Shown here: positions 11,010-63,447 of the stretch, in pieces
Layout of the letters: each line of letters opens with the position of its first letter
Numbering within the stretch: position 1 is the stretch's first letter
Notes under the pieces: generated by a model
The model's database searches: none
What the model was told of the DNA's origin: nothing
What the model saw: the letters and a program-made list of their open reading frames with translations, nothing else
Made by a program: the position numbers and the translations under genes
Source of the DNA: Macrostomum lignano
Taxonomy: Eukaryota
Direction of reading: 5' to 3'
Assembly: GCA_002269645.1 (NCBI GenBank)
Contig: NIVC01001309.1
Coordinates: 1 to 64,000, forward strand
DNA length: 64,000 nt

Positions 11010-12568
11010 GTCGGGATCAGCCTAATTCAATAGAGATGTGATCTCACTTGAGTCTGATGAGATCTCAGTCGAGTCTGATGGGATCTCACTAGAGTCTGAT
11101 GAGATCTCACTTGAGTATGATGGGATCTCACTGGAGTATGATGGGATCTCACTTGAGTCTGATGGGATCTCATTTGAGTCTGATGAGATCTCATTTGAGT
11201 ATGATGGGATCTCACTCTTGAGTATGATGGGATCTCACTTGAGTATGATGGGATCTCACTGGAGTATGATGGGATCTCACTCTTGAGTATGATGGGATCT
11301 CACTCTTGAGTATGATGGGATCTCACTCTTGAGTATGATGGGATCTCACTCTTGATTATGATGGGATCTCACTCTTGAGTATGATGGGATCTCACTGGAG
11401 TATGATGAGATCTCAGTCGAGTCTGATGGGATCTCACTAGAGTCTGATGAGATCTCACTTGAGTATGATGGGATCTCACTGGAGTATGATGGGATCTCAC
11501 TCTTGAGTATGATGGGATCTCACTCTTGATTATGATGGGATCTCACTCTTGAGTATGATGGGATCTCACTCTTGAGTATGATGGGATCTCACTCTTGAGT
11601 ATGATGGGATCTCACTCTTGAGTATGATGGGATCTCACTCTTGATTATGATGGGATCTCACTCTTGAGTATGATGGGATCTCACTCTTGAGTATGATGGG
11701 ATCTCACTCTTGAGTCTGATGGGATCTCACTCTTGAGTATGATGGGATCTCACTCTTGATTATGATGGGATCTCACTCTTGAGTATGATGGGATCTCACT
11801 CTTGAGTCTGATGGGATCTCACTCTTGAGTCTGATGGGATCTCACTCTTGAGTATGATGGGATCTCACTGGAGTATGATGAGATCTCAGTCGAGTCTGAT
11901 GGGATCTCACTAGAGTCTGATGAGATCTCACTTGAGTATGATGGGATCTCACTGGAGTATGATGGGATCTCACTCTTGAGTATGATGGGATCTCACTCTT
12001 GATTATGATGGGATCTCACTCTTGAGTATGATGGGATCTCACTCTTGAGTATGATGGGATCTCACTCTTGAGTCTGATGGGATCTCACTCTTGAGTATGA
12101 TGGGATCTCACTCTTGAGTATGATGGGATCTCACTCTTGAGTATGATGGGATCTCACTCTTGAGTCTGATGGGATCTCACTCTTGAGTATGATGGGATCT
12201 CACTCTTGATTATGATGGGATCTCACTCTTGAGTATGATGGGATCTCACTCTTGAGTCTGATGGGATCTCACTCTTGATTATGATGGGATCTCACTCTTG
12301 AGTATGATGGGATCTCACTCTTGAGTATGATGGGATCTCACTCTTGAGTATGATGGGATCTCACTCTTGAGTATGATGGGATCTCACTCTTGATTATGAT
12401 GGGATCTCACTCTTGAGTATGATGGGATCTCACTCTTGAGTATGATGGGATCTCACTCTTGAGTATGATGGGATCTCACTCTTGAGTATGATGGGATCTC
12501 ACTCTTGAGTATGATGGGATCTCACTCTTGAGTATGATGGGATCTCACTCTTGAGTATGATGGGATCT
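11010..12568. repeat. 21/23-bp minisatellite (GATGGGATCTCACTCTTGAGTAT)
   Basis: 21-bp units at the left end change to 23-bp units. A variant block recurs at ~11060, ~11395 and ~11865. Confidence 0.97.
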
Positions 12569-12884
12569 CAAAGGAGTGTGACAGAATCTTATCTGCGAAG
12601 GCTGGGATCTTACCCGAGTGGGATGGCACCCCACTCGAATGTGATGGTATCTGACCTGATTGACTTGGGGAATCAGTTCCTCATTTTGGTACGCAGGTTT
12701 GGGTTAAGCCTAGGGCCTGGATTAAGCAAGGGAAACAATAAATATTTAATAATTAAAATAATAACCAACAGAAATGTGATTAAAAACACAAATTATAAAC
12801 TGAATAAGTAGATGGAGATTAGCGCCTGGCTGATATGAAGCGGCAAAACATTGGCTCAGTCTTACTCTCCCCCCCCCCCAAATT

Positions 12885-15800
12885 TCAATCTTCGGCCTCA
12901 GACTCGGCCGGGTTGCCGTGCAGAAACGGGCAGGTGTCACCTTTGAAGCACTCGCCAGCCGACCAGAACTTGCAGATGACCCGGTTGAGGTCGTGCGCGA
13001 ACTCGCAGTCCTCCTTCTTGCAGCGGCCTCGCAGTAGAAACGAACAGGCCCGCTTAGACTTCTCAAGCGGCGTCATCGGCTGCCGGCGAACCGGAGTTGG
13101 AGAAGTCTGCTGCTGCTGCTGCTTCTGATCCGGCTTGGGCGGCACCGGCTTCCGAGACCACATCTGGCAGCGAAGGCGGTCCAGCTGGGTCCACTGAGCC
13201 ATGCGGCCCAGCAACTCGTTGGCAGGCAGGGCGACTATGCCGGTTGCCATGGCAACTGTTGGTGGCTTAGCAACGGAGACACTAGACGACGCGGAGACGG
13301 AGACTGCGACAGATGCAGCAGCGGTGGAGCTGACCGAGCCCTGGTCGCTGGTGGCGTCCTCCGCAATGTCGTCAATGTCGAGCAGCGCCTGCGGCGGCAA
13401 TTCCTCCTCTTGGCTGGGCAGGTTGTCGAAATCGTGATCGCTGAGCAGCTGCAGATGGGGGATGGCTGACTGACTGACTGACTGACTGACTGCCTGACTG
13501 ACTGACTGACTGACTTGAGTGAGTGACTGACTGACTGACTGACTGACTGCCTGACTGACTGCCTGACTGACTGACTGACTGCCTGACTGACTGACTGACT
13601 GACTGCCTGACTGACTGACTGACTGACTGACTTCCTGACTGACTGCCTGACTGACTGACTGACTGACTGACTGCCTGACTGCCTGACTGACTGACTGACT
13701 GACTGACTGACTGCCTGACTGACTGCCTGACTGACTGACTGACTGACTGACTGACTGCCTGACTGACTGACTGACTGACTGACTGACTGACTGACTGACT
13801 GACTGACTAATTAACTGACTGCCTGACTGACTGACTGACTGACTGACTGACTGACTGACTGACTGATTAACTAACCAACAAGCCAGGTATAGCATACACA
13901 CCTCAGCCTCATCCTCCATCAAGGACATGCCAGTGAGCAGTCCGCAGTTGGTATTAACGGCACCAATAATCTGCTCGCTGTCGGGCAAATCCAGCGACAG
14001 AGGCTCCGACAACCGATTAAGAAGAAGTCTGTCGGGATCTGCTTTGCTGCTACTAGAAGCAGGTGCGGCGGCAGCTGCGGAAGCCAATTCGTCTTCAATC
14101 TCCCTGTTGAAGCTGTGCAGAATGTGGCTGACGAGCTGAAGGATCTCAGAGCCTTCGCTAGTGACGCTGACAGCATCGTCTCCGTCTTCATCTTCCTCCT
14201 CAGCCTCCACAGCTTCATCCAGTTCCTTCTCGTCAGCTTCCAACTCCTCTTCCAGCTCCTCATCCCCGAGGTACTCGTCGCCCTCTAGGAAGCCTTCGTC
14301 GGTGGTGGCGGCCGCCGATGCACAGGAGGCCACAACGCGGCGTTGTCGGCGATGAAGTCGACGGCCAGGCAGCCGGTTCTGGTGCTGCAGGCTGAGCGGC
14401 GGGCCTCTGCAAGTTCAGTTTGAGCAGCGGGTGAGCAGCACGATTGGGACGGACTTATAAATAGACGACAGTTTAAAGTAGGGATTCATAGAAAGATGCC
14501 TTTGTAAGATTCTTAGAAAGATCGCTTCTTAAAGTAGAGATTCTTAGAAACAGAGCAACTTTTAAAGTAAAGCTTTTTGGCAACAAAGCGACATTTTTAA
14601 AGTAGAGATTCTCGGAAACAAAGCGACATTCATGAAGTAGAGATTCTTGGAAACAAAGCGACATTCATGAAGTAGAGATTCTTGGAAACAAAGCGACATT
14701 CATTAAGTATTGATTCTTGGAAACAAAGCGACATTCATTAAGTATTGATTCTTGGAAACAAAGCGACATTCATTAAGTATTGATTCTTGGAAACAAAGCG
14801 ACATTCATAAAGTAGAGATTCTTGGAAACAAAGCGACATTCATGAAGTAGAGATTCTTGGAAACAAAGCGACATTCATGAAGTAGAGATTCTTGGAAACA
14901 AAGCGACATTCATGAAGTAGAGATTCTTGGAAACAAAGCGACATTCATTAAGTATTGATTCTTGGAAACAAAGCGACATTCATTAAGTATTGATTCTTGG
15001 AAACAAAGCGACATTCATTAAGTATTGATTCTTGGAAACAAAGCGACATTCATAAAGTAGAGATTCTTGGAAACAAAGCGACATTCATGAAGTAGAGATT
15101 CTTGGAAACAAAGCGACATTCATGAAGTAGAGATTCTCGGAAACAAAGCGACATTCATGAAGTAGGGATTCTCGGAAACAAAGCGACATTCATGAAGTAG
15201 AGATTCTTGGAAACAAAGCGACATTCATGAAGTAGAGATTCTTGGAAACAAAGCGACATTCATGAAGTAGAGATTCTTGGAAACAAAGCGACATTCATGA
15301 AGTAGAGATTCTTGGAAACAAAGCGACATTCATTAAGTATTGATTCTTGGAAACAAAGCGACATTCATTAAGTATTGATTCTTGGAAACAAAGCGACATT
15401 CATTAAGTATTGATTCTTGGAAACAAAGCGACATTCATAAAGTAGAGATTCTTGGAAACAAAGCGACATTCATAAAGTAGAGATTCTTGGAAACAAAGCG
15501 ACATTCATGAAGTAGAGATTCTTGGAAACAAAGCGACATTCGTGAAAAGTCTGTAGCTGGTTTCTTACAAAAATGTAGCGATTCTTAGAAAAAACTACAG
15601 TTTAACAGTTTAATCATCCATATGTTACCTCCCCAGCCATACCTAGCCCAAGCCGAGCCGGCATATCTGCCGGAGCCGTCGATCGGTTTATTCGCAGCTC
15701 TACTAGCAGAGCCTCCAGCGGCCTCGAAACAGCCGTCGCGCCTCAGCGCTTCGGCCAGGGCGGGAAAGGCGCAGACATAGTCCTCGGTGGCGGCGGCGGC

Positions 15801-18800
15801 TGGAGCGGCAAGCTCCTCAGGCGTGCTGGCCTGGCCCGAGTCCGTCACATCGATAGTCGCTCCGCTGTCCTCGTCTGCAGTGCCAGCAGCAGCAGCAACA
15901 ACAACTGTAGGCGAAATTCCATCAACAATGTCTTCGACTTGGTTGGTTGCGCTGGCTTTGACCCGGAATCGGAACTCGCCGCCAGCGCCGGGACTGCCGA
16001 CCTCTTCTTCGGCTAGCTGAGGCAGCCGCTTGGGGTTCGGCTGCAGAGCTGCGCCGCCTGTGGCAGCGTTGAGCCGCCTTAGGCGGTAGCACAGCTCGTC
16101 TGTAGTGGGCGAACAGAGACGGAATTTTAAAGGACTTCTTGAACTTTTATTAAGGGACTTCTTGAACTTTTATTTAAGGACTTCTTGAACTTTTATTAAG
16201 AGACTTCTTGAACTTTTATTTAAAGACTTTCTGAACTTTTATTAAAGGACTTCTTGAACTTTTATTAAAAGACTTCTTGAACTTTTATCAAGGGACTTCT
16301 TGAACTTTTATTAAGACTTCTTTGAACTTTACTAAAGGACTTCTTGAACTTTTATTAAGGGACTTCTTGAACTTTTATTAAAAGACTTCTTGAACTTTTA
16401 GAATGGCATTTATAAAAACTCTGTTTAGACTACTTGAGTTAGTAGGGTGTTAAGCGCTAACACAAAAACTTTTGGACGACTCTTTTACAATTCTGAAACT
16501 CGTTGAGTCGTTAAAAAGTCGCAAGAGTCGCTGGAATCACTGGTGAGTTGTTTGCAATGACTCTAGCGGTTCTTGTTATGGAAATGTTGTCAACGGGCGC
16601 CGTTATTTTGTCCAATAAAGACTACCTCCTATCACTTCAACACAGCCTTACCAATCAACTCGTCCAATTCGTAGGGGTCATTGCAAGCCGACTGCAGGCA
16701 TTGCACCGCCTCGGCCCGCTTCCTGCTGCTCACGCCGCTGGCCAGCCCGATGGCAGCTTCGCTTGAGGAGTCAGAGAGCAGAGTGGCTTGCTGCTGCTGC
16801 TGCTGCTGCTGCCTCCTGCGCCTCGACTTTCGACCAGGCCGTTTGACTCCGGCGGCAGAGTCCGACTCCTGATCGGAGACTTCGCTTCTGCGCGAGTTTG
16901 CCGGGTTTGAAAATCAATGAGTTGCTATATAATATTTATGCCTGTTTATTAACATTAATTATTTACTATTACAAAGACGGTTGCATTTACCAAAACTATT
17001 ATTAAGTAAAACTGCCATAGACATGCTATATAGCTGCGTATCGTATACTCGTACTCGATTCTATTATCTGGCAGATAGATTAGCAATCCTTTAGAATCCT
17101 TCATCTAGCAGATACATTAGCAATCCGTTATAATCCTTTATCTGGCAGATAGATTAGCAATCCGTTATAATCCTTTATCTGGCAGATAGATTAGCAATCC
17201 GTTATAATCCTTTATCTGGCAGATAGATTAGCAATCCGTTATAATCCTTTATCTGGCAGATAGATTAGCAATCCGTTATAATCCTTTATCTAGAAGATAG
17301 ATTAGCAATCCGTTATAATCCTTTATCTGGCAGATAGATTAGCAATCCGTTATAATCCTTTATCTAGAAGATAGATTAGCAATCCGTTATAATCCTTTAT
17401 CTAGCAGATAGATTAGCAATCCGTTATAATCCTTTATCTAGCAGATAGACTAGCAATCTGTTATAATCCTTTATCTGGCAGATAGATTAGCAATCCGTTA
17501 TAATCCTTTATCTAGCAGATAGACTAGCAATCCGTTATAATCCTTTATCTAGCAGATAGACTAGCAATCCGTTATAATCCTTCATCTAGCAGATAGACTA
17601 GCAATCCGTTATAATCCTTTATCTAGCAGATAGATTAGCAATCCGTTATAATCCTTTATCTAGCAGATAGATTAGCAATCCGTTATAATCCTTTATCTAG
17701 CAGATAGACTAGCAATCCGTTATAATCCTTTATCTAGCAGATAGATTAGCAATCCGTTATAATCCTTTATCTAGCAGATAGATTAGCAATCCTTTATAAT
17801 CCTTCATCTAGCAGATAGACTAGCAATCCGTTATAATCCTTTATCTAGCAGATAGATTAGCAATCCGTTATAATCCTTTATCTAGCAGATAGACTAGCAA
17901 TCCGTTATAATCCTTTATCTAGCAGATAGATTAGCAATCTGTTATAATCCTTTATCTAGCAGATAGATTAACAATCCGTTATAATCCTTTATCTAGCAGA
18001 TAGATTAACAATCCGTTATAATCATTTATCTAGTAGATAGATTAACAATCCGTTATAATCCTTTATCTAGCAGATAGATTAACAATCCGTTATAATCCTT
18101 TATCTAGCAGATAGATTAGCAATCCGTTATAATCCTTTATCTAGCAGATAGATTAGCAATCCTTTATAATCCTTCATCTAGCAGATAGACTAGCAATCCG
18201 TTATAATCCTTTATCTAGCAGATAGATTAGCAATCCGTTATAATCCTTTATCTAGCAGATAGACTAGCAATCCGTTATAATCCTTTATCTAGCAGATAGA
18301 TTAGCAATCTGTTATAATCCTTTATCTAGCAGATAGATTAACAATCCGTTATAATCCTTTATCTAGCAGATAGATTAACAATCCGTTATAATCATTTATC
18401 TAGTAGATAGATTAACAATCCGTTATAATCCTTTATCTAGCAGATAGATTAACAATCCGTTATAATCCTTTATCTAGCAGATAGATTAACAATCCGTTAT
18501 AATCATTTATCTAGTAGATAGATTAGGAATCCATTGTGATCATTGCTTTTAGTTTATACTCGTATAATAGAAGTTTGAGATCACCTAGAAAGAGTTACTA
18601 AATATTTATTCCGACTAAGGCATTATTGCATTAAAATTTGCATGGATGCACGAAGCCTAAGGCTACTTAAAAGGCAGCAAAAAGATAAGATAAAGATATC
18701 TTGGGTATAATATTTATAATTCATTCCGACTGCGTACTTTAAAGGTACACGTCCAATGTACATTAGAGAAATTTATCCATGTGCCAGACCCTAAAATCAG

Positions 18801-26905: not shown

Positions 26906-28229
26906 CGGCCCCTGCATGGACAGCCATCAAAGTCAGCAGATGCATGTGTAAATCCAGTGCAATAATTAACTCTCGTGGAAGCAGCAGTGCCAGCATATGA
27001 TGATTTTATTTTTCTGCTCTATACTACTGCAGGTATTCCCGGCACAAATCAAGGAGTACTCAAGGCCTACTCAATATTTCGGTAAAACCAGGACCTCCAG
27101 CAAAATTTTCAGGATTTTCAGGATTTTCAAGTTATAGTTTTCTACAGCATGCAATGCAATCATGATGATGGTAGTAATTTGGTAAATACCTGTACTTCAA
27201 AAGTAAAAATGAGCTGTTCATAAAAAGTGTTTTTATACAGTATAGCGAATAATAAATAATTAAGCTTACATTACTTCACGAGCTGAGGTAAAATCACACA
27301 AAACTTACTTGAAATTCTGTACGTGACGTCTGCGTAGATTTATAAGTTTCAAAATGTTGCTTAAGTCAGGTATATACAGCGTAATTAACCACTGCAGTTA
27401 CACTTGCAGCAGGCAGCAGTAGATCTACTGTAAAGCCGAAGTTTATTTTTATAAAAAGTCGTCCTTTTTATATTTAGACTTTATACATCTGTAGCAGTTT
27501 TTTGTAAGCCCTTGCGCCGTACCCATAGAGTGTTGCCCAGCAGGTGCATCACAGCTCTCAGAACACTGCCCTATATTCATATATGACGAGTGTAACTCTT
27601 ACTTGTACAGTATAGAAAGACTGCCGCAGACACTGTACTGGGACAAGTAAAATACTGTTATATAGGCTCTTTCGGTTTACAACATCGTCCATATATGCAG
27701 TGGATGTACTACGATGTACATGTACAGTTGTACAACTCAACTGTCACGATAAAAATATGTACCCAATGATGATGCATGGAGACTGGCCGAGATGCAGAGA
27801 ATTACATTTGAGAAGAATGAGGCAACACAGTACGTAATACAATTGGTGGAGCAATGTCTATTCAGAAGGAACCAAAAACTTCTAGCTCAGAAAGCAGTCT
27901 GGTGGATGGGTGGTATATACATAGCACAGACGTTTCGTACTGCAAATATCTGACGAAATGGGTGGCGGGTTAATATTAAAAATTAAGTTAGCTAGATGCT
28001 ATGCTTTACACTATACTCAGAAATACGCCCACACACTCCCGCTTTACAAATTGGCATGCCGCAACTCATATATGCCTCGGTTGAACAATGAGGGTATATA
28101 TGCACAGCACAGTGTTAATAAAAAGACACCATATAAGTATAAAGGCCCTGCATCATTTTTTAACTCATTCACAAGTTAAAAAGAGGCGCCAATAAAAATT
28201 TGAGAGGTGCCAGGCACTGCCAGTAGTCT

Positions 28230-29515
28230 AGACCTGAGAGAGGCGCCAATATAGACCTGAGAGAGGCGCCAATATAGACCTGAGAGAGGCGCTAATATAG
28301 ACCTGAGAGAGGCGCTCATATATAGACCTGAGAGAGGTGCCAATCTAGACCTGAGAGAGGCGCCAATCTAAATGTGAGAGAGGCGCCAATATAGATAAGA
28401 GAGAGGCGCCAATCTAGATCTGAGAGAGGCGCCAATCTAGACCTGAGAGAGGCGCCAATCTAAATGTGAGAGAGGCGCCAATATAGATAAGAGAGAGGCG
28501 CCAATCTAGATCTGAGAGAGGCGCCAATCTAAATGTGAGAGAGGCGCCAATATAGATAAGAGAGAGGCGCCAGTCTAGATCTGAGAGAGTCGCCAATATA
28601 TCTAGGTCTGAGAGAGGCACCAATATATCTAGGTCTGAGAGAGGCGCCAGTCTAGATCTGAGGGGGCGCCAATCTAGATCTGAGAGAGGCGCCAATCTAG
28701 ATGTGAGAGAGGTGCCAATATATCTAGATCTGAGAGAGGCGCCAATATATCTAGGTCTGACAGAGGCGCCAATATATCTAGGTCTGACAGAGGCGCCAAT
28801 ATATCTAGGTCTGAGAGAGGCACCAATATATCTAGATCTGAGAGAGGCGCCAATCTAGACCTGAGAGAGGTGCCAATCTAGACCTGAGAGAGGCGCCAAT
28901 CTAAATGTGAGAGAGGCGCCAATATAGATAAGAGAGAGGCCCAGTCTAGATCTGAGAGAGGCGCCAATATATCTAGGTCTGAGAGAGGCACCAATATATC
29001 TAGACTGAGAGAGTCGCCAATATATCTAGGTCTGAGAGAGGCACCAGTCTAGATCTGAGGGGGCGCCAATCTAGATCTGAGAGAGGCGCCAGTCTAGATC
29101 TGAGAGAGGCGCGAGTCTAGATCTGAGAGAGGCGCGAGTCTAGATCTGAGAGAGGCGCGAGTCTACATCTGAGAGAGGCGCCAATCTAGATCTGAGAGAG
29201 GCGCCAGTCTAGATCTGAGAGAGGCGCCAATCTAGATGTGAGAGAGGTGCCAATATATCTAGATCTGAGACAGGTGCCAGTCTAGATCTGAGAGAGGCGC
29301 CAATCTAGATCTGAGAGAGGCGCCAATCTAGATGTGAGAGAGGTGCCAATATATCTAGATCTGAGACAGGCGCCAGTCTAGATCTGAGAGAGGCGCCAAT
29401 CTAGATCTGAGAGAGGCGCCAGTCTAGATCTGAGAGAGGCGCCAATCTAGATGTGAGAGAGGCGCCAGTCTAGATCTGAGAGAGGCGCCAATCTAGATCT
29501 GAGAGGCGCCAGTCC
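28230..29515. repeat. 23-bp minisatellite (TCTAGATCTGAGAGAGGCGCCAA), array A
   Basis: About 55 units, some with a 2-bp AT insertion. Confidence 0.96.
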
Positions 29516-29993
29516 AGCTGAAAATCGCATTTTGCAAAGCAGCAGTTAACATACTGCTGAATACCCAATCTGCAGTACTCGTGCATATACATACTTATAA
29601 AGTTCCATGCACATTGTGCAGATATGATCTACACTGTATTAATAGTAACAAATTTACAAGAAATCATTCATGCAGTACATTCGCCAATTTTCAGATCTGC
29701 ATTCTCTTCGATATTTTTGAATAGACAGTAAAGAAATACGGCTGACAGCACAGCATGCACCGAGAAGAGAACTTCCTCTCTTGAGCTTCCAAAAATGTGT
29801 GAGTGCAGGGTAAACTGCACATGTTTGTAACAATGAGAGAGACCATAACACCACAATGATCAAGCTACGTACTTATTTTAGACTATTTAAATCCAATACT
29901 ATTTGATTATTAGGTGACTCCAGAAATTCTTTCAAGTCAGCTACAGATCTTATAAATTGAAAAAAAATCATTGTTAAGCATTGTTTATCTTCA

Positions 29994-31597
29994 ATGCACG
30001 AACGCGTAGAAATGTCCGACATGAATTTTGACACCGAGGCCGTGAGATTAGGATTAGAATTAGTGCCGGAAAAGTCCCGTGTGAATAGCACTTTCAAGTT
30101 TGCAACGATTCTATGTTCAGTTCTGATTTCATCAATAATGCTACTGATGACTGTGCTATTTTGCAGTTCACTGGTGCAACGTCATTCTAAGGTTAGTTAT
30201 GCGGTCAATATTGACATTAACTGTGCAAATTTCCATATACGCGGGTACATCGACGAAATTTAAAATTATTTTGCATTTCCAGGAAATGCTAACCGTAACG
30301 GTTGCGAGGAGAAACACGAGCGGCATGACGTTTGGTGCGTTTATTCTGACTTGTTAAAAGCGCTTAAAAACGCCCCTAAAACGCCGCCAAAACTCACTAA
30401 ACTCTACCAAACCTCTACCAAACCTCTACCAAACCTCTACTAAACCTCTACCAAACCTCTACTAAACCTCTACCAAACCTCTACCAAACCTCTACCAAAC
30501 CTCTACCAAACCTCTACCAAACCTCTACCAAACCTCTACCAAACCTCTACCAAAACTCTACCAAACCTCTACCAAACCTCTACGAAACCTCTACCAAACC
30601 TCTACCAAAACTCTACCAAAACTCTACCAAAACTCTACCAAACCTCTACCAAACCTCTAACAAAACTCTACCAAAACTCATTGAAAGCGACCCAGCGCCC
30701 CCGCAACTCCACCGAAACGTATCAAAAAGGCTTCTTATTAGAAGTCTTTATTTTTTAATTCAACGTGATCCACAGATTCTCAGCTTCTCGCACCATTGAA
30801 AGTTTTCACACACGAATCGAACTCGAATGGGGCTGCTCGAAACTGCTTGAAGCTGACTGACAAGCAGCTGGGCGTTGAAATTCGTTGCTATGGCCTTTAT
30901 ATAGTTAGCGCACAGGTAAGTCACGGGTCTCTGGAAAAAAGTAATGAAATAAAAAAGGATGCAATGACGTTGGAATGGACACAGCGGAATCAGAATGGAC
31001 ACAATGAGAAAAGAATCGACACAGGGACTACTAGGTGTTTGAGTAGTCCCTGAATCGACACAATAAAGTCAGAATGGACACAAAGAAGTAAGAATGGACA
31101 TAATGACGTCGGAATGGACACAATAAGGTCATAATGGACACAGCGGAACCAGAATGTACACAATGAGAACAGAATCGACACAATAAAGTCAGAATGGACA
31201 CAATGAGGTCAGAATGGACACAATAAAGTCAGAATAGACACAATGAAGTCAGAATGGACAGAACGGGGTCAGAATGGATACAATGAGGTCAGAGTGGGCA
31301 CAATGGGCTTAAAGTGATTCTGTAGAACCTGTCACTAAACAGGTAAGCTACACGAGCTGTCAATCAGCATCCTACCTGAAGACAGCAGTGAGCATTAACA
31401 GCAAGGACCTGGCTACCTGCTACTCGACCAGCCTGGCCGCACACGCCACGCCAGTTCAAGCTTGCCAGCTGACCACGGCACGCCGGATGAAGAACGGAGA
31501 TCGGTTACAGTTGAAGCATTTCCACTGGCTGGCAGTGGCGACTGAAGCGCAGATGACTTTCATGACTGTCACCATGATGGGAGCCGAAGTCAGCTGA
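29994..31597 (+). CDS. TNF-superfamily ligand (type II membrane, EDA/Eiger-like), 214 aa; exons 29994-30191, 30283-30334, 30776-30915, 31343-31597
   Basis: Donors gttagt, gtgcgt and gtaagt; acceptors ttccag, ccacag and aaacag; phases 0,1,0 give 645 nt with no internal stop. N-terminal tail, then TM segment FATILCSVLISSIMLLMTVLFCSSLV, then a TNF homology domain: LKLTDKQLGVEIRCYGLYIVSAQ|VSY (consensus L.V...GLY.vysQV.F), VSINSKDLATC...QAC (E-F Cys pair), and RMKNGDRLQL...MTFMTV (consensus L..GD.l.v...TFFG). Confidence 0.85.
30400..30680. repeat. 11-bp repeat (AAACCTCTACC), intron 2 of the TNF-like gene
   Basis: About 25 copies. Confidence 0.96.
30965..31305. repeat. ~20-bp degenerate repeat (CACAATGAGGTCAGAATGGA), intron 3 of the TNF-like gene
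   Basis: Recurrent CACAAT / GAATGGA motifs. Confidence 0.85.
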
Positions 31598-31699
31598 AGT
31601 GCACGAGGTGCCTTTGCTGAAGTTGAAAATGCTTTGATCTCTAACGCTCGTAGATGGGCCATATAAAACATTTTTAATATTAACTGGGTTTCTTAGTAT

Positions 31700-32705
31700 A
31701 GAGACAACTGCCATAGAGAGACAACTGCCATAGAGAGACAACTGCCATAGTGAACTGCCACCATAGAGAGACAACTGACATAGAGAGAGAACTGCCATAG
31801 AGAGACAACTGACATAGAGAGAGAACTGCCATAGAGAGAGAACTACCATAGTGAACTGCCACCCTAGAGAGACAACTGCCATAGAGAGACAACTGCCATA
31901 GAGAGACAACTGACATAGAGAGAGAACTGACATAGAGAGAGAACTGCCATAGTGAACTGCCACCATAGAGAGACAACTGCCATAGAGAGACAACTGTCAT
32001 AGAGAGACAACTGCCATAGAGAGACAACTGCCATAGAGAATTGCCATAGAGAGACAACTGCCATAGAGAATTGCCATAGAGATACAACTGCCATAAAGAG
32101 AACTGCCATAGAGAGAACTGCCATAGAGAGAACTGCCATAAAGAGAACTGCCATAGAGAGACAACTGCCATAGAGAATTGCCATAGAGAGACAACTGCCA
32201 TAAAGAGAACTGCCATAGAGAGAACTGCCATAGAGAGAACTGCCATAGAGAGAACTGCCATAGAGAGAACTGCCATAAAGAGAACTGCCATAGAGAGACA
32301 ACTGCCATAGAGAGAACTGCCATAGAGAAATAACTGCCATAGAGAGACAACTGCCATAGAGAGACAACTGCCATAGAGAGACAATTGCCATAGAGAGACA
32401 ACTGCCATAGAGAGAACTGCCATAGAGAGAACTGCCATAGAGAACTGCCATATAGAGAGAACTGCCATAGAGAACTGCCATATAGAGAGAACTGCCATAG
32501 AGAACTGCCATAGAGAGAACTGCCATAGAGAACTGCCATATAGAGAGAACTGCCATAGAGAACTGCCATAGAGAGAACTGCCATAGGGAGAACTCCCATA
32601 GAGAACTGCCATATAGAGAGAACTGCCATAGAGAACCGCCATAGAGAGACAACTGCCATGGAGAGACAACTGCAATAAAGAGACAACTGCCATAGAGAAC
32701 TGCCA
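31700..32705. repeat. 13-18-bp repeat (GAGAGA[C]AACTGCCATA)
   Basis: Variable-length units immediately 3' of the TNF-like gene. Confidence 0.96.
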
Positions 32706-33221
32706 TAGAGTACTGCTATTGGAAGAGCTCCCATAGCATACAATAGGCTACTATTCCTCGAGAGTTAACTGAAAGCAGAAAGAAACGTCTACACTAAGAA
32801 AATATGCTTATAAATGGCAAATTAAGTTTTATTTTATTTGAGCTTTTTAAAGTAAAAATTTGTTTAAAAATAAAAATTTAAGGTTTTTATATTCTTTTAA
32901 TTTTTCCCTTGACAATTTTTAACTTAAACGGTCAATGGCGCAGTGAAAAATTTGTACAATTTTTTCATACCTTTTCCTAATATACTACTTTCCTAATTTC
33001 ATTCAAAAGCTGGGAACATTGTTTATGCACTCTTAGTGTTTCCGTTTTTGGAATAATTTTCTCCAAAAAAAACTCAAAAACCATTTCGATGCTACTTTGT
33101 TTTAGACAGCAAAGTATACCTTAACAGTTCGCAGTGTTCCAATGTTCGTCGATATGAAGCCGTTCAAGAATTCAAATAGATTTCTTTCAAAACTTATCTC
33201 TGGGGGCATCGGCTGCGCTAA

Positions 33222-33862
33222 TCTAGACCTGGAAAAGGCGCCAATCTGAATGCGAGAGAGGCGCCGATCTAGATCTGGAAAATGCGCCAATCTGAATGCG
33301 AGAGAGGCGCCGATCTAGACCTGGAAAAGGCGCCAATCTGAATGCGAGAGAGGCGCCGATCTAGACCTGGAAAAGGCGCCAATCTGAATGCGAGAGAGGC
33401 GCCGATCTAGACCTACAAAAGGCACCAATCTGTATGCGAGAGAGGCGCCGATCTAGACCTGGAAAAGGCGCCAATCTGAATGCGAGAGAGGCGCCGATCT
33501 AGACCTGGAAAAGGCGCCAATCTGAATGCGAGAGAGGCGCCGATCTAGACCTGGAAAAGGCGCCAATATAGACCTGAGAGAAGCGCCAATCTAGACCTGA
33601 GAGAGGCGCCAATCTAGATCTGAGAGAGGCCCCAATCTAGACCTGAGAGAGGCGCCAATCTAGATATGAGACAGGCGCCAATCTAGATGTGAGAGAGGCG
33701 CCAATCTAGACCTGAGAGAAGCGCAAATCTAGACCTGAGAGAGGCGCTAATCTAGACCTGAGAGAGGCGCCAATCTAGACCTGAGAGAGGCGCCAATCTA
33801 GACCTGAGAGAGGCTCTAATCTAGACCTGAGAGAGGCGCTAATCGAGATGTGAAAGAGGCGC
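33222..33862. repeat. 23-bp minisatellite family, array B (46-bp dimer at the left end)
   Basis: TCTAGACCTGGAAAAGGCGCCAA alternates with TCTGAATGCGAGAGAGGCGCCGA, then monomers match array A. Same orientation as array A. Confidence 0.95.
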
Positions 33863-34282
33863 CCATGTTTTTACTAACCCCAAAATTATTGGAAAATAAA
33901 AAACGCGCATTGCTACTAAAAGGAGGTAATAACAACATGCATGCAGGACTGCTTTCCAAACTGTGCACAGCCAAAAAGTGCATAGGCACTAGAATTACTG
34001 GCCGGTGAAAAACAGTTCAGTTAAGTATATGAAGGAAACCCAGCACCGGCAGGCCAAAAACTTTAGTCAAATATTGCCGCTGAGTCCTTTGGAGGGAGAC
34101 GAGAGCTTTGGAAGTATGGCTGGCGGTCAATACCGACTCATGCCATGCACCACCTTAATATAGCTTTTTGCCAAGTGCATCATCATAGCCTGTTTTATAG
34201 TACAGGGTCTCCCATGCAGGCAAGGTGTGAGGATGCTGTGGAGCTCAATTGTTTGGAAATTGTGCAGGGCTATGGCCTAAAG

Positions 34283-41104: not shown

Positions 41105-43060
41105 TCAATCAGATTTCAATCAGGTTTCAGTCAGATTTCAGTCAGATTTCAGTCAGATGTCAGTCAGATGTCAGTCAGATGTCAGTCAGGATTCATTTAG
41201 ATCTCAATCAGGATTCAGTCAAATGTCAGTCAGGATTCAGTCTGGATTCAGTCAGATGTCATTCAGATCTCATTCAGGATTCAGTCAGATGTCAGTCAGG
41301 ATTCAGTCTGGATTCAGTCAGATGTCATTCAGATCTCATTCAGGATTCAGTCAGATGTCAGTCAGGATTCAGTCTGGATTCAGTCAGATGTCATTCAGAT
41401 CTCAATTAGGATTCAGTCAGATGTCAGTCAGGATTCAGTCTGGATTCAGTCAGGATTCAGTCAGATGTCATTCAGATCTCAATCAGGATTCAGTCAAATG
41501 TCAGTCAGGATTCAGTCAGGATTCAGTCAGATGTCATTCAGATCTCAATTAGGATTCAGTCAGATGTCAGTCAGGATTCAGTCAGGATTCAGTCAGATGT
41601 CAGTCAGGATTCAGTCAGGATTCAGTCAGATGTCATTCAGGATTCAGTCGGATGTCATTCAGGATTCAGTCAGATGTCAGTCAGGATTCAGTCTGATGTC
41701 AGTCAGATTTCAGTCAGATGTCAGTCAGGATTCAGTCAGATGTCAGTCAGATGTCAGTCAGATGTCAGTCAGGATTCATTTAGATCTCAGTCAGGATTCA
41801 GTCAAATGTCAGTCAAGATTCAGTCTGGATTCAGTCAGATGTCAGTCAGGATTCAGTCAGGATTCAGTCAGATGTCATTCAGGATTCAGTCTGATGTCAT
41901 TCAGGATTCAGTCAGATGTCATTCAGGATTCAGTCAGATGTCAGTCAGATTTCAGTCAGATGTCAGTCAGGATTCAGTCGGATGTCATTCAGGATTCAGT
42001 CTGATGTCATTCAGGATTCAGTCAGATGTCATTCAGGATTCAGTCAGATGTCAGTCAGATTTCAGTCAGGATTCAGTCGGATGTCATTCAGGATTCAGTC
42101 AGATGTCAGTCAGGATTCAGTCAGATGTCATTCAGGATTCAGTCAGATGTCATTCAGGATTCAGTCAGATGTCATTCAGGATTCAGTCAGATGTCAGTCA
42201 GGATTCAGTCAGGATTCAGTCGGATGTCATTCAGGATTCAGTCAGATGTCAGTCAGGATTCAGTCAGATGTCAGTCAGGATTCAGTCGGATGTCATTCAG
42301 GATTCAGTCAGATGTCATTCAGGATTCAGTCAGATGTCAGTCAGGATTCAGTCAGATGTCATTCAGGATTCAGTCAGATGTCATTCAGGATTCAGTCAGA
42401 TGTCAGTCAGGATTCAGTCAGATGTCATTCAGGATTCAGTCAGATGTCAGTCAGGATTCAGTCAGATGTCAGTCAGGATTCAGTCAGATGTCATTCAGGA
42501 TTCAGTCAGATGTCATTCAGGATTCAGTCAGATGTCATTCAGGATTCAGTCAGATGTCAGTCAGGATTCAGTCAGATGTCATTCAGGATTCAGTCAGATG
42601 TCATTCAGGATTCAGTCAGATGTCATTCAGGATTCAGTCAGATGTCATTCAGGATTCAGTCAGATGTCATTCAGGATTCAGTCAGATGTCATTCAGGATT
42701 CAGTCAGATGTCATTCAGGATTCAGTCAGATGTCAGTCAGGATTCAGTCAGATGTCATTCAGGATTCAGTCAGATGTCATTCAGGATTCAGTCAGATGTC
42801 ATTCAGGATTCAGTCAGATGTCAGTCAGGATTCAGTCAGGATTCAGTCGGATGTCATTCAGGATTCAGTCAGATGTCAGTCAGGATTCAGTCAGATGTCA
42901 GTCAGATATCAGTCAGATGTCAGTCAGGATTCATTTAGATCTCAGTCAGGATTCAGTCAGATGTCATTCAGGATTCAGTCAGATGTCAGTCAGATTTCAG
43001 TCAGATGTCAGTCAGATTTCAGTCAGATGTCAGTCAGGATTCAGTCTGATTTCATTCAGG
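41105..43060. repeat. 11-bp-based satellite (TCAGTCAGATG / TCAGTCAGGAT / TCATTCAGGAT)
   Basis: About 2 kb, starting just beyond the GPCR stop codon. Confidence 0.97.
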
Positions 43061-43074
43061 GTCACATGTCCCAG

Positions 43075-46000
43075 TTAATCCTCAGTAGACACCATCGCCA
43101 CAGCCACAGGCGCGGAGGTCGCTGCCAGGGTTGTCTCCGCTGTGCCTTCGTCTGTGGGCGTCGCACTCTTGTCAGGAGACTGCGACCTGACGTGTTCCAG
43201 ACTCTCGATTTCGTCATCAGCTGGTCGAATCAGCTGCGATTCGTGATGCTGCTGCTGAAGCTGTTTCAGCTCCATGCAGGACTCATCCACTCGGACACCC
43301 AGCTCAGCCTTGTCTGCAGACAGCTTGACCAGCCTCCTCTTGCCAATGGCATCCGCTTCATCAATAATGTTGGTCTGATTTTTTCGGCTACGCCGATTGC
43401 GACGAAATATTCGATCAAATTCCGAGCGAAAGTTCTCGCTGAAGAAGCCGTGCAGGGCGGGGTTGGCGCAGGCGGACAGCAGCAGGAGCAGCAAGCAGCC
43501 GCCCTGCAGCATCGGGATGTTGAAGATGTCGGAGCCTTCGCTGCTGCCACCGCCAACTCCAGCGCCGCCTCCAGTGGTACCACCGCCGCCGCCGCTGTTA
43601 TTGAAGTTGATCTTCAGCGACTGCACCCTCAGCGTGGCCACGTCCATGTAGATGTTCTGGATAGTCAGCGGGCACCAGCTGACTGCGAACTGGCCGACGG
43701 TCAGCACCAGCAGCAGCTTGGCCCGGGTCTGCTTCCGATGCTCCCGACGGGATCGGCGTCGGCGATACTCGGACGTCGACCGGCTCGGCTGCCGGATGCT
43801 GGGATGCCGGCGCTGCATCACCCGGCCGATTCTGGCGTAGGCAACCAGCAGGACCGTCAGCGGGATGAGGAACTGGACGGCCAGGGTCACGCAGCTGTAG
43901 GCCAGCTTCAGCGAGGTGCCCAGGCCGGCGCCGGTGTCCTCGGAGCACAGGTACACCCGGCGACTGGAGAAGCCGCGGTTCTGCGTCAGCTTAGCCAGCC
44001 AGGCCAGCGGCGAGGCCATCAGCAGGCCGAGGCCCCAGATCAGCAGCACGAAAGCTTTGAGTCGGCTTCGGGATACCCGACTGGTGGACGGATGGACGAT
44101 GGCCTGCGAATGTTTTCCGGTTGGGTTGAATGAAGTTTGAGCAGCTGTACATGTAGTCAGCCGAAATTTATCGTGAATTCCAAAGCTGACTGTCGCTCCT
44201 CGACCCGCACCATTCATTTGGGGCTTGTGTGCACTAAAAGCTACTGACGTGCGATTCGCAACCCCCAAGGCACGGAGAGTGTACATCCCTGACGATCAGA
44301 AAGTCAGGGCCACTGTACACACTGTGTGAGCGTGGGTGTGAGTTCGTACAGTATGCGTTCAGGAGTCAGCGGAGTTGGCCGATGCGACCAAACTGTGTGA
44401 AGGACCTCCGAACCTCTCTGACTGGATCCCGCGCGATTGCTCTGGCGCATGGCAGTTGAAAAAATCCATTGAGATCAATTCGATTGTCAGCTTCCTTCAT
44501 CGAAATTTCTTGAATATCCTCAAGCCGTCCATATCGTGCCAGAAAGAAAATTCGGATCGTTTTTCCCCCGAACAGAAATCACTCGTGACTCGTGACGAGA
44601 AGGAGCTCTGAGGGGAAGCCGCTGACCAGCGGGCTACAGCGACTGATGAGGCAGTTTTAAATACACAGGGGTCGGGCAGACCTCATCTGGACTCAATCAA
44701 GAGGATTCCATCAAAGCAGCCCCTCGTCTACTGTCCCAGCATCCATGCAATCTGTCGTCGTCATCAGATTAGAAAGAGTAAATCCCAACGCGCACACCAT
44801 GTGGGGCAGAAGGCCAAAACTGGATTGTGAGCTTCTACGCACGCGAAATCTGTCAGATGGGAGGGCAGGGCGGAGGACGCTGTGAATTAATTACAACCGA
44901 TTGGAGGAGGGCCCAGCGTCTGTCAGAGCCCAGAGTCGGGCCGGTCCACAGAGAGAGAGAGGGAAACGGAAAAGCGGGGAAGAGAACTGCAACAAAATCC
45001 TATGGGTCGAGCTAGGTCCTTCCTCTATAGTTTAGGCTCAAAAAAGAATTAGAACGAGTCTCGGAAAAGCAGGCTATGCTTCATGGCGTCCCATTAACAT
45101 TAATATATGTTAAAATTATTACGTACTGGACACCAAAGTCTACACACTTAGCAGACACCCTAGTGGACAGTCCGATGGACACCATATAGTGGACAATCTG
45201 CAGATGGACACCCTATAGTGGACAATCTAATGGACACCCTATAGTGGACAATCTAATGGACACCCTATAGTGGACAATCTAATGGACACCCTATAGTGGA
45301 CAATCTAATGGACACCCTATAGTGGACAATCTAATGGACACCCTATAGTGGACAATCTAATGGACACCCTATAGTGGACAATCTAATGGACACCCTATAA
45401 TGGATCGACGAGTTGATGGACACCCTAGGAGACGAGTTGATGGATAACCTAGGAGACGATTTGGTGGATAACCTAGGAGACGAGTTGATGGACACCCTAG
45501 GAGACGAGTTGATGGATAACCTAGGAGACGATTTGGTGGATAACCTAGAAGACGAGTTGATGGATAACCTAGGAGACGATTTGGTGGATAACCTAGGAGA
45601 CGAGTTGATGGATAACCTAGGAGACGATTTGGTGGATAACCTAGTAGACGATTTGGTGGATAACCTAGGAGACGATTTGGTGGATAACCTAGAAGACGAT
45701 TTGATGGATAACCTAGGAGACGATTTGGTGGATAACCTAGAAGACGATTTGATGGATAACCTAGTAGACGAGTTGATGGATAACCTAGTAGACGAGTTGA
45801 TGGACACCTAGTAGACGAGTTGATGGATAACCTAGTAGACGAGTTGATGGATAACCTAGTAGACGAGTTGATGGATAACCTAGTAGACGAGTTGATGGAT
45901 AACCTAGTAGACGAGTTGATGGATAACCTAGTAGACGAGTTGATGGATAACCTAGTAGACGAGTTGATGGATAACCTAGTGGAAAATCTGATGAAGATTT

Positions 46001-52954: not shown

Positions 52955-55900
52955 ATGCCATCGATCGATGACTTGATTCGCGAGTTGTCACGAAGTTTTG
53001 AACTTCTTTCGGATGGTGAGGCCACAAGGTTCCAGCGGAAAAAGTCTTTAGAAACAATTTGGACAAAATCGAAGGAACACTTTAGCAGCCTCGCATCTGA
53101 TCGCGACGCTCAACAAGAACAGACGCAGCAATTTCTATCGTATTCTACAAAGTTTTTGGCCAGTAGCTTCTCAGACCAGACGGAGTTGATCCGGGAGAAA
53201 TCCATTGATATTGTGACCTACTTTGTACAGAATACTGAAGAACTTCCACAAGCAGTGTGCACCACCATTGTAAACATTCTCGTTGGCCGTCTGGGCCAGA
53301 ATCAAAAAGATGTTGTCGAGCCATCCGAGGAACTTCGGCTGAAGATGTCAATCTTACTTGATGCACTAATCAACAAGCTGCAGAAGAATTCGCACCTGTA
53401 CTTGTCAGAATTTACCCAGGTGATTGTCCAGATTCTTGACGACGCCTTTCACGAGGTTAAAAAGCAAGCTTGCAACACACTAAGTAACCTGGCTAAGCTG
53501 ACTGAAGGCTATTTTCACCCATTCACGGAGAAATTCATTAAGCCCTTGCTACATAATATTGCTCATCAGCATTCAAGAGTGAGAAAGGATGTCATCAGAA
53601 CTGTTGGTGATGTCATCCAGTATGGATCTGGAAAGCATGTTGATGATGTGCTCAGTCATTTGGCTCAAAGATTATTTGATGATTCACCCTTGGTTCGAGA
53701 AGAAGTCATTAATGTTGTTGGTACATGGCTTTTAGATTTGCCTGATCGCTATTCATTTTTCCATAAGTTGATCCCTTTGCTTCTAACTGGACTTTCTGAT
53801 GAGATTCCATCGATTGTGGAAAAGTCTGAGGCTTTTTGGGATGATATTGGTAAGTTTTTCAATTAGAACATTATTAACTAACTTATTTTAAGCATTTTTT
53901 AAAGAATTATCTTAAAAAGGCCTTTAAATGAAAATTATTCAGTTGTTATATAATAGAAGATTTGCACAAGTTAATTATACTGACAAAAAAATCACTTTTT
54001 ATCATATTTATATGAAATACCTATTTTTTGTTTCTTGGGTTATTGACTACTTATATGTTTGATTTATTTTTAATTTCATCCAGCTTATATAAAGAATGAA
54101 TTGATATACTTTTGGTATTACTTTAATATATAATATATTTATGTAAAGATTTTAAGATAAAACTTTTCTATGTATATCTATAGTGTTTATTTAATATAAT
54201 TCTTGCATTATATATATCTATGCCTACTTTAATTATATATTTTCTAGTTTTTATTTTGAATGCATTTGATTTTGTATTGTTTTTGTTGGTCTAGGTCTAT
54301 TAAAAATTCTTATAATTTTTTTACTAAAGCCTTGGTTAATGATCATCAAAAATTCAATAATTAAAATGCTAGAATTGAACTATATAACCTATCTATATTA
54401 CTAATTTAAAAAAATATATTTTAACTATGCTTCTAAGCATAAAAGTAATATTAACTATACTTTTCAATCCTGTTAGGTTGATCTATCAAAATTAGAATAA
54501 ATCAGTCATCTTAACTTTATATAGGATATAAAATTTTATATTATATAAATATACTACTCTTCTTACTACTAACCAGGTGCCAAGTTTGAGGCTGAGAATG
54601 AAGAGGACCTAAAAGACAAGCAGGACTTTGCTACCTTGTGTCCGGAACACTACCCAGTGCCACCAGCTAAGCGACCAAATCTTGGCTGCAGAACTTTGGT
54701 GAATCGCAATCTCTCGAAGGTTGGTGATTAAAAGCATAATTAGAAAATTGGCAATCTGCTTTACAACAGAGTTTAAGCTTGGGGTTGAAATAAGTAATGT
54801 AGAAAATAAAGGACTTCTGCTGTAATCTACAGAGCTAGTTGAAAAATATACCTCACATTCTAAGTTAGAAGGGGGCAGAAACCAGAGCCACGATTGTCAG
54901 AGGGGGCGGAAAACCAGCTTCCACAATTGTCAGAGGGGGCGGAAAACCAGCTTCCACAATTGTCAGAGGGGGTGGAAAACCAGCTTCCACAATTGTCAGA
55001 GGGGGAGGAAAACCAGCTTCCACAATTGTCAGAGGGGGCGGAAAACCAGCTTCCATGATTGTCAGAGGGGGCCGAAAAACTAAGCAGTCAGCGCGCCGCC
55101 CCCGCCCGCAGATCCTGCCGCCCCTATCCCGCGACCTCACCGACTGGGTGGCCTCCACCCGGCTGAAGTCCGCCCAGCTGCTGCCGCATCTGATCCTGGC
55201 GGCCGAGTCCTACACGACCCAGCACCTGGAGACGCTGCTCACCGCCGCCTATCGGGCCGCAGCTGACGACGAGGCCGGCGTTCGCCGCGGCGTAGACCAG
55301 GCAATCTTCTACGCCAGCCACTTTGCCGAGCCGTCGCTCTGGTGGCGCCTCGTCGGGCCGCACGTCAAGCGGTCCGCGGACGGCAACCGGCAGCTCGCCA
55401 GCGCCCTCCGCGTGCTGACCCGCCTGCTGGCCGGTGCTGAGCCACGCCTGGCCCGGCCGCTGCTGCCCGAGGTGGCCGCCGCTCTGGCCGCCAGCGATGT
55501 CGCCTGCGGCGCCTACGGCTTGGATACTAAATGGCGCCTGTTGAAGTGCTTGGATAGTCTTGTTGGAGTGTGCGACTCTGCGGCGGTTAGTGACTGCGGT
55601 TTCATGGGCCTCTTCACCCTGTCACTCTCCCTGTCACTCCACTTGTCACTCTCCTTATCATCCATCCTGTCACTCTCCCTGTCACTCCACTTGTCACTCA
55701 CCCTATCATCCACCCATGTCACTCTCCCTGTCACTCCACTTGTCACTCACCCTATCATCCACCCATGTCACTCTCCCTGTCACTCCACTTGTCACTCTCC
55801 TTATCATCCACCCTGTCACTCTCCCTGTCACTCCACTTGTCACTCTCCTTATCACCCACCCTGTCACTCCACTTGTCACTCTCCTTATCATCCACCCTGT

Positions 55901-58720: not shown

Positions 58721-59204
58721 ATTTGCCAGTGACTAGATACCGGCACGCCTCCAATAGGACTCTACGGCCCCTGAGTCGTTTCAGAGTTTCAGACAATAAA
58801 CCGCCTCAAACTGGCTCTTAGGCGACTTTTATCGCAAAATTTCATCTTTTTACAGTCGTCTAGAGTTACGTTACTTTCCTGTTTTACTTGTGTTACCTGC
58901 AACGACTCTTGGGACGGCTTCTTGGCCTGGGTACCGTTTTCATCGGGCTTGCTCCATCTTTTTTCTCCGTCCATTCAACCCCATGAGCTGTAGTGTGTTT
59001 TGCTGTTGTCTGCTATTGTCCCATTTTATTAGCCGTGCTTAATAATACTTATTGTTATTAATAATAATGATGATAATGATGATTTTCTATCCTTAAACAA
59101 CTTTAATAAGCTACTGCTGCCTAACACATCTTGAAAGTTGATCAACAAATGGAGCTTAGCTTGTGTTATTATATTTAATTTCTTGTTGAAAATTGAGTAC
59201 TTCC

Positions 59205-62200: not shown

Positions 62201-63447
62201 GACTTCCATCCCTCATTACAGAATGACTTCCATCCCTGATTACACAATGACTTCCATCCCTCATTACACAATGACTTCCATCCCTCATTACACAATGACT
62301 TCCATCCCTCATTACAGAATGACTTCCATCCCTCATTACAGAATGACTTCCATCCCTCATTACACAATGACTTCCATCCCTCATTACACAATGACTTCCA
62401 TCCCTCATTACAGAATGACTTCCATCCCTCATTACACAATGACTTCCATCCCTCATTACAGAATGACTTCCATCCCTCATTACAGAATGACTTCCATCCC
62501 TCATTACACAATGACTTCCATCCCTCATTACACAATGACTTCCATCCCTCATTACAGAATGACTTCCATCCCTCATTACACAATGACTTCCATCCCTCAT
62601 TACACAATGACTTCCATCCCTCATTACACAATGACTTCCATCCCTCATTACACAATGACTTCCATCCCTCATTACAGAATGACTTCCATCCCTCATTACA
62701 CAATGACTTCCATCCCTCATTACACAATGACTTCCATCCCTCATTACACAATGACTTCCATCCCTCATTACACAATGACTTCCATCCCTCATTACAGAAT
62801 GACTTCCATCCCTCATTACACAATGACTTCCATCCATCATTACACAATGACTTCCATCCCTCATTACAGAATGACTTCCATCCCTCATTACACAATGACT
62901 TCCATCCCTCATTACACAATGACTTCCATCCCTCATTACACAATGACTTCCATCCCTCATTACACAATGACTTCCATCCCTCATTACACAATGACTTCCA
63001 TCCCTCATTACACAATGACTTCCATCCCTCATTACACAATGACTTCCATCCCTCATTACAGAATGACTTCCATCCCTCATTACACAATGACTTCCATCCC
63101 TCATTACACAATGACTTCCATCCCTCATTACACAATGACTTCCATCCCTCATTACACAATGACTTCCATCCCTCATTACACAATGACTTCCATCCCTCAT
63201 TACACAATGACTTCCATCCCTCATTACACAATGACTTCCATCCCTCATTACACAATGACTTCCATCCCTCATTACACAATGACTTCCATCCCTCATTACA
63301 GAATGACTTCCATCCCTCATTACAGAATGACTTCCATCCCTCATTACAGAATGACTTCCATCCCTCATTACAGAATGACTTCCATCCCTCATTACAGAAT
63401 GACTTCCATCCCTCATTACACAATGACTTCCATCCCTCATTGCAGAA
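59205..63447. repeat. 24-bp satellite (AATGACTTCCATCCCTCATTACA[C/G]), ~175 copies
   Basis: 4.2-kb near-perfect array with a few recurrent single-base variants. Confidence 0.98.

Follow-up and report, generated by a model that had tools for sequence, protein, structure and literature searches.

A stretch of 64,000 nucleotides from the flatworm Macrostomum lignano (assembly GCA_002269645.1, contig NIVC01001309.1, positions 1 to 64,000 of the forward strand; the whole stretch is called the window here) contains, close to its centre, a protein-coding gene of four exons which probably encodes a divergent and compact ligand of the tumour necrosis factor (TNF) superfamily, belonging to the flatworm TNF ligand family. 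The gene would be a further member of an already known family, and one that is invisible to the TNF model of Pfam. TNF ligand sequences of free-living flatworms have been published in a supplementary file (Bertevello 2020, PMC7519573). A profile hidden Markov model (HMM) built from nine published ligands of Macrostomum lignano, M. tuba and Microdalyellia ruebushi, with the candidate left out, matched the spliced protein with 52.0 bits (E = 1.6e-14) in one single stretch, from residue 82 to residue 209, while the best score in a shuffle control (n = 5000) was 11.1 bits. BLASTP searches against ten published ligands gave E-values from 5e-7 to 7e-5, always in the same region, with identities of 31-33% to the Microdalyellia ligands and 21-28% to those of Macrostomum. 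An initial annotation of this DNA had proposed a highly divergent, compact invertebrate TNF ligand, and the match to the flatworm family supports this proposal, via flatworm sequences only. The published flatworm ligands are mutually only 20-30% identical across clades, so the divergence of the candidate is not unusual for the family.

When the window was scanned in six frames, the flatworm HMM matched only two of the 1783 open reading frame (ORF) pieces, namely those containing exon 3 and exon 4. The exon 4 piece alone gave an E-value of 1.1e-8 over profile positions 59-143, and the exon 3 piece alone one of 9e-4 over positions 12-70, on the same strand and in the right order. Because the two matches are colinear and meet at the motif G-x-Y-x-[IV]-x-x-Q-V, the junction between exons 3 and 4 is backed by homology, beyond the splice consensus. 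The junction peptide GLYIVSAQ/VSY, which the initial annotation had pointed out, is present in the assembled exons, as are the other motifs quoted there (VSINSKDLATC, QACQLTTARRMKNGDRLQL and MTFMTV). All eight invariant columns of the family are retained (G123, Y125, C156, C171, R177, R178, G182 and D183), and at the 20 columns that are at least 85% conserved in the nine ligands the candidate is identical at 11 and identical or similar at 14. The family-specific features G-x-Y, the two cysteines, RR, GD and TF are present.

In order to relate the family to canonical TNF ligands, the Protein Data Bank (PDB) was searched with a profile of ten sequences, the candidate plus the nine published ligands. 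This profile matched 76 distinct PDB sequences, and all 60 among the matches listed were TNF ligands. The top listed match was a single-chain APRIL-BAFF-BAFF fusion, whose E-value of 6e-29 is the sum over three domains; it was followed by EDA-A2 (1e-10), EDA-A1 (4e-10), BAFF (3e-8), Spodoptera Eiger (6e-8), APRIL (5e-6), TWEAK (7e-6) and Drosophila Eiger (1e-4), whereas CD40L, RANKL, TNF-alpha and FasL gave 3e-3 or worse. The fold was modelled with AlphaFold for residues 67-214, using a two-row alignment with one M. lignano TNF ligand. The model had a mean predicted local distance difference test (pLDDT) of 64.1, a predicted template modelling (pTM) score of 0.60 and nine beta strands arranged as a jelly-roll, the core of which reached a pLDDT of 70-89; residues 67-92 were not confidently predicted. 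A Foldseek search of the PDB with this model returned EDA-A1 (1rj7) first, with an E-value of 7.6e-6 and a template modelling score of about 0.6, and then TNF-alpha, EDA-A2 and Eiger; the top matches had a probability of 1.00 and template modelling scores of 0.5-0.6, and Cerebellin-1 appeared at rank 15. Another model, of the full protein from its single sequence, was uninformative (pLDDT of 42) except for the transmembrane helix. The assignment to the EDA/BAFF/APRIL/Eiger type, already made in the initial annotation, is thus supported by the profile E-values, 1e-10 to 1e-4 for this subgroup as compared with at least 3e-3 for the others, and by the rank of EDA-A1 as top fold match. Together, these results show that exons 3 and 4 contain the coding sequence of a TNF homology domain, and that this domain is of the EDA/BAFF/APRIL/Eiger type.

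Four short exons, separated by one 91-bp intron and two repeat-filled introns, had been proposed to splice in phase into a protein of 214 residues. Sequence reading and Tandem Repeats Finder confirmed this structure with all its coordinates (Table 1). The exons measure 198, 52, 140 and 255 nt, adding up to a 645-nt frame of 214 codons plus TGA, and all three introns have GT and AG at their borders. The start codon in exon 1 is the first ATG downstream of an in-frame stop. A codon-usage log-odds score, trained on the DNAAF5 exons of the window, which are a small set, was highest in the modelled frame (0.02); the five remaining frames scored -0.14 to -0.54, and the introns -0.15 to -0.65.

Table 1. 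Positions of the candidate TNF ligand gene, its parts and the other features of the window
Feature	Position	Strand	Remarks
Possible TATA box	29951-29957	+	TATAAAT, 37 nt 5' of the ATG; suggested by sequence reading
Exon 1, residues 1-66	29994-30191	+	ATG, cytoplasmic tail of ~35 residues, signal-anchor transmembrane helix; donor AAG/GTTAGT
Transmembrane helix, residues 36-61	30099-30176	+	Part of exon 1
Intron 1	30192-30282	+	91 bp, phase 0, GT..AG; acceptor tttgcatttccag/G
Exon 2, residues 67-83 + 1 nt	30283-30334	+	EMLTVTVARRNTSGMTF; carries RR75-76 and the N77-T-S sequon; donor TTG/GTGCGT; least certain exon
Intron 2	30335-30775	+	441 bp, phase 1; 11-bp minisatellite CCAAACCTCTA, ~27 copies, 30387-30679
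Exon 3, residues 84-130	30776-30915	+	TNF homology domain, N-terminal half, to GLYIVSAQ (strand C); donor CAG/GTAAGT
Intron 3	30916-31342	+	427 bp, phase 0; 20-bp minisatellite, ~13 copies, 31052-31305, also 30973-31023
Exon 4, residues 131-214 + TGA	31343-31597	+	TNF homology domain, C-terminal half with strands C-H
Landmarks of exon 4	31418-31420; 31463-31465	+	Cys156; Cys171; also RR177-178 and GD182-183
Possible variant polyadenylation signal	31662-31667	+	TATAAA, 65 nt past the stop; suggested by sequence reading
23-bp minisatellite	28227-29505		Unit TCTAGATCTGAGAGAGGCGCCAA, ~54 copies
17-bp array	31700-32710		Begins ~100 bp past the stop codon
46-bp minisatellite	33221-33863		14 copies; reads as two diverged copies of the 23-mer TCTAGATCTGAGAGAGGCGCCAA
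ORF of 482 aa with C-terminal CCCH zinc finger	12885-14333	-	Pfam 1.3e-7
DNAAF5/HEATR2, two large exons	52955-53866; 55055-56215	+	Pfam TPR_DNAAF5 7.7e-92, HEAT_DAAF5 7.2e-33

The architecture encoded by the four exons, a short tail, a signal-anchor helix, a short linker and a C-terminal jelly-roll, is colinear with that of the Macrostomum ligands. The full-length alignment with these ligands, which have 213-229 residues there, runs colinearly throughout, the transmembrane segments being aligned with each other, and directly past this segment the HSKEMLTVTV of the candidate is aligned with the HKSIHLVID of the Macrostomum ligands. Residues 36-61 form a strong hydrophobic anchor (Kyte-Doolittle mean of 2.6, also over residues 39-57), and the single-sequence model of the full protein contained a helix at residues 27-65 with a pLDDT of 83-91 in its core. 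This anchor is the only one in the protein, and the N-terminus of the protein is unlike a cleavable signal peptide; the flanking charges are compatible with either orientation in the membrane, and type II topology is predicted from the homologues. The stop codon lies five residues past the last strand, as it does in the homologues.

The ectodomain contains five cysteines, at positions 107, 121, 136, 156 and 171. The last two had been read as the cysteine pair of strands E and F, a reading that agrees with the alignments, since Cys156 and Cys171 do not vary across the ten-sequence alignment and fall on the pairs of EDA-A2, APRIL and BAFF; a disulfide is predicted between them. In this subgroup, the aligned pair of EDA, APRIL and BAFF is the E-F disulfide. 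In the AlphaFold model the two residues lie in consecutive strands, the sixth and seventh of nine. The RR dibasic site proposed for a very short stalk (V-A-R-R, residues 73-76) is indeed the only one that the protein has apart from the conserved core, but its placement in the stalk did not stand as clearly, because model and alignment disagree: the first strand lies at residues 91-96 in the AlphaFold model as compared with a strand at 68-73 in the alignment, which would put RR75-76 either in the stalk or in the region of the first strand. Ligands of the EDA/BAFF/APRIL/TWEAK/Eiger type are shed at furin sites. No furin motif (R-x-K/R-R) was found in the stalk of the candidate, where V-A-R-R has a valine at P4.

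Several observations weigh against the identification as a TNF ligand gene. The first cysteine of the family motif LGPLxC...C is lost (Val93) and the DD that belongs to this region is replaced by TH, the candidate reading LAPLKVFTH...NC, in which the second cysteine of the pair (C107) remains; judging from the sequence, these losses and the five ectodomain cysteines could reflect relaxed constraint. The AlphaFold model is only of moderate confidence, and a true TNF ligand was one of the two rows of its alignment. For exons 1 and 2 the evidence consists of the splice consensus and a weak alignment. Searches made directly with the spliced protein also gave no TNF ligand: a phmmer search of the PDB returned no meaningful match, only a chance one to an HTLV capsid (E = 1.7); a word-indexed search of 5.8 billion clusters returned nothing; and an exhaustive phmmer search over 1.84 billion representative proteins returned no TNF match. 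The check with Pfam that the initial annotation had proposed failed as well, since the spliced protein matched neither PF00229 (gathering score of 23 bits) nor C1q even at an E-value of 10, its single Pfam match being DUF2206, below threshold.

The result with Pfam is a matter of sensitivity and not evidence of absence, because published flatworm relatives themselves score 31.2, 24.7, 19.4, 16.0 and 12.9 bits against PF00229, so that two of them pass the gathering score and three fall below it. When the protein collection was searched with a profile of the family alignment, only the known M. lignano protein was found, and a metagenome scan with the exon 4 peptide found no relative. The lack of database matches is uninformative on expression, since the DNAAF5 gene of the same window has a best identity of 46-50% in the same protein collection (38% to the DNAAF5 of Echinostoma caproni), which contains at least one M. 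lignano protein.

A first alternative, which is compatible with a TNF ligand gene and which we regard as rather unlikely, accepts the TNF domain of exons 3 and 4 as real and takes the 5' part of the gene to be wrongly modelled: the true transcript would contain a different exon 2, leave exon 1 at a different donor or start from a first exon further upstream, and its N-terminus would differ accordingly. Linking exon 1 to the frame of exon 3 needs an exon with a length of 1 mod 3, and 56 in-frame joins with GT..AG borders can be drawn between the two; moreover, the HMM alignment begins only at residue 82 and AlphaFold was unconfident over residues 67-92. However, the modelled join ranked first among the 56 by a crude consensus score, and it supplies the transmembrane anchor that is found in every full-length homologue. 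The alignment of HSKEMLTVTV with HKSIHLVID and the length of 214 residues, which fits the 213-220 residues of the Macrostomum ligands, also argue for the model as drawn. As the 56 joins illustrate, open-frame splicing between GT and AG is by itself not rare.

An improbable second alternative is a decaying or unexpressed paralogue of a flatworm TNF ligand gene, in other words a young pseudogene, whose frame is still open but which has ceased to make a working cytokine. The loss of the first conserved cysteine and of the DD motif and the odd number of ectodomain cysteines would fit such a reading, as would introns invaded by minisatellites in a very repeat-rich region; in addition, no relative was detected in the collections searched and the gene is known from genomic sequence alone. 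On the other hand, all four exons are open and have canonical splice sites, the eight invariant positions are kept, the stop codon is at the position typical of the family, the modelled frame has the best codon usage, and the divergence is normal for the family, all of which argues against this reading.

Two bacterial RTX/Ig-repeat proteins, with E-values of 2.7e-7 and 4.5e-4, came up in the phmmer search over the representative proteins and were rejected as chance matches summed over repeats, because five to eight tandem repeats of 7-15 bits each had been added up and the alignments straddled repeat boundaries. The resemblance between a bacterial Ig-like repeat and the candidate is short, TPTQGQTLTAANTLADLDGLGTIHYQWLA against TPVQACQLTTARRMKNGDRLQLKHFHWLA, and it is the summation that lifts it to 2.7e-7. 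This case illustrates that whole-sequence E-values of repeat proteins can mislead. The reading that the protein has nothing to do with TNF ligands, and is an ORF spliced together by chance or belongs to some other beta-sandwich family (such as C1q/cerebellin or bacterial Ig-like repeats), is hardly credible: these two bacterial proteins being the only matches among 1.84 billion, the presence of Cerebellin-1 in the fold list and the missing Pfam TNF match speak for it, but the flatworm TNF profile collects its 52 bits in one stretch, as opposed to the repeat-summed bacterial matches, all listed PDB profile matches are TNF ligands and C1q proteins are secreted by means of a signal peptide, so that, as far as sequence comparison can tell, the HMM score, the PDB profile matches and the six-frame scan largely refute it.

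A mode of action can be proposed for the TNF ligand by analogy with its homologues. The protein would insert into the membrane as a type II protein, and three jelly-roll domains would form a homotrimer by packing through strands with conserved aromatic and hydrophobic residues (G-x-Y in strand C, TF in strand H). The loop facing the receptor would be stiffened by a disulfide linking Cys156 of strand E to Cys171 of strand F, as in EDA, BAFF and APRIL. The trimer would then cluster the NGFR-like TNF receptor of the animal, leading to the recruitment of TRAF adaptors. The ligand may be active while bound to the membrane, or it may be shed by cleavage near ARR/N (residues 74-77), which is not a furin site.

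Intron 3 is flanked by a 9-bp direct repeat, ACAGGTAAG, at positions 30912-30920 and 31339-31347 (when extended, 11 of 13 bases are identical), and as a consequence a copy of the donor site, GTAAGC, opens exon 4. Read from the sequence, this edge repeat resembles the duplication of a target site or of an AGGT segment, and intron 3 would then have been gained through the insertion of the minisatellite-bearing segment. Read-through of the donor at exon 3 would give AQVSHGS, as compared with AQVSYTS.

According to the accepted picture, most flatworms, and all the parasitic ones, keep the TNF receptor although the ligand has been lost, and may rely on the TNF of the host. Of 30 flatworm species surveyed, all were reported to have TNF receptors, while TNF ligands were reported only from a few free-living species of Macrostomida and Rhabdocoela and none from parasitic species (PMC7519573; bioRxiv 10.1101/2024.07.27.603686). 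The statement in the initial annotation that parasitic flatworms are reported to retain TNF receptors without an evident ligand was correct (PMC7519573). The TNF receptor of flatworms is reported to be a single one of the NGFR-like type (PMC7519573). No relevant paper on a TNF ligand of planarians came up in a literature search. Screens of predicted proteomes would miss a ligand such as the one described here, because it is invisible to the Pfam TNF profile and split into four small exons by minisatellite-filled introns. The candidate widens the profile of the flatworm family, and exon-level six-frame searches of planarian and parasite genomes with it would be a direct test of ligand loss; if ligands of this kind have been missed in the lineages without a reported ligand, those outside Macrostomida and Rhabdocoela and possibly also triclads or parasitic Neodermata, the picture of ligand loss would need revision. 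The candidate is also a potential endogenous partner for the TNF receptor of the animal, one that could be tested in wounding, regeneration and immunity.

The gene is flanked on both sides by related minisatellites in the same orientation, the 23-bp and the 46-bp arrays of Table 1. The window as a whole is unusually dense in mini- and microsatellites, with about 35 distinct arrays (for example at 59212-63449, 17064-18532, 11035-12570 and 41105-43060), including 177 copies of a 24-bp unit (4.2 kb), 875 bp of (ACTA)n and 579 bp of (AGAT)n. Many of the long ORFs listed for the window lie inside such arrays (for example 59029-63423 in several frames, 41674-44133 and 31680-32693) and are probably not genes. 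The ORF with the CCCH zinc finger contains a (CTGA)100 microsatellite at 13466-13866 within its open frame, which means either that this microsatellite is translated or that the ORF combines an exon with a repeat. Scans of the window with Rfam and for tRNAs found nothing.

When the candidate is set against known systems, the C1q/cerebellin proteins share the jelly-roll fold class with it, Cbln1 being among the Foldseek matches. They differ from the candidate, which has no C1q match at the sequence level and carries an N-terminal membrane anchor, a feature of TNF ligands. Eiger (Drosophila 6zt0 and Spodoptera 6i50) is an invertebrate TNF ligand and was matched in fold with E-values of 2.6e-5 and 1.2e-4, the sequence match being weaker than that to EDA. 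Eiger is a type II protein with a long stalk that binds Grindelwald and Wengen.

BAFF, APRIL and TWEAK were matched by the family profile, and the alignment to the APRIL and BAFF domains of the fusion chain 4zch shows that the cysteine pair is shared, as is the motif xGDxhxh ahead of strand G; in the alignments of BAFF, APRIL and EDA, by contrast, the RR before GD is absent, RR being specific to the flatworm family. EDA-A1 and EDA-A2 (1rj7 and 1rj8) gave the best single-domain profile matches among those listed as well as the best structural match, and their cysteine pair is aligned with that of the candidate, but the identity in the structural alignment is about 15% and the domain of the candidate is shorter, with a short region from strand A to strand B. 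EDA has a collagen-like stalk with a furin site; sequence reading, which is not a formal test, revealed no collagen-like G-x-y run in the 214 residues of the candidate.

The closest relatives are the ligands of Macrostomum and Microdalyellia (such as BOX15_Mlig009154g1). The candidate differs from them in the absence of the CPxP...PC loop, in its extra cysteines 121 and 136 and in its longer cytoplasmic tail, and it does not match the Pfam TNF family, whereas several Macrostomum members do. It is of the same size as these ligands (214 residues as compared with 213-220) and has the same order of parts, an N-terminal transmembrane anchor followed by a short linker and a C-terminal TNF homology domain. 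The motif G-x-Y-x-[IV]-x-x-Q-[VT], the two cysteines and the motif C-x-[LV]-x-x-x-R-R-[LFM]-x-x-G-D are shared with them, and in the candidate, as in the other flatworm ligands, the C-terminus lies a few residues past the last strand.

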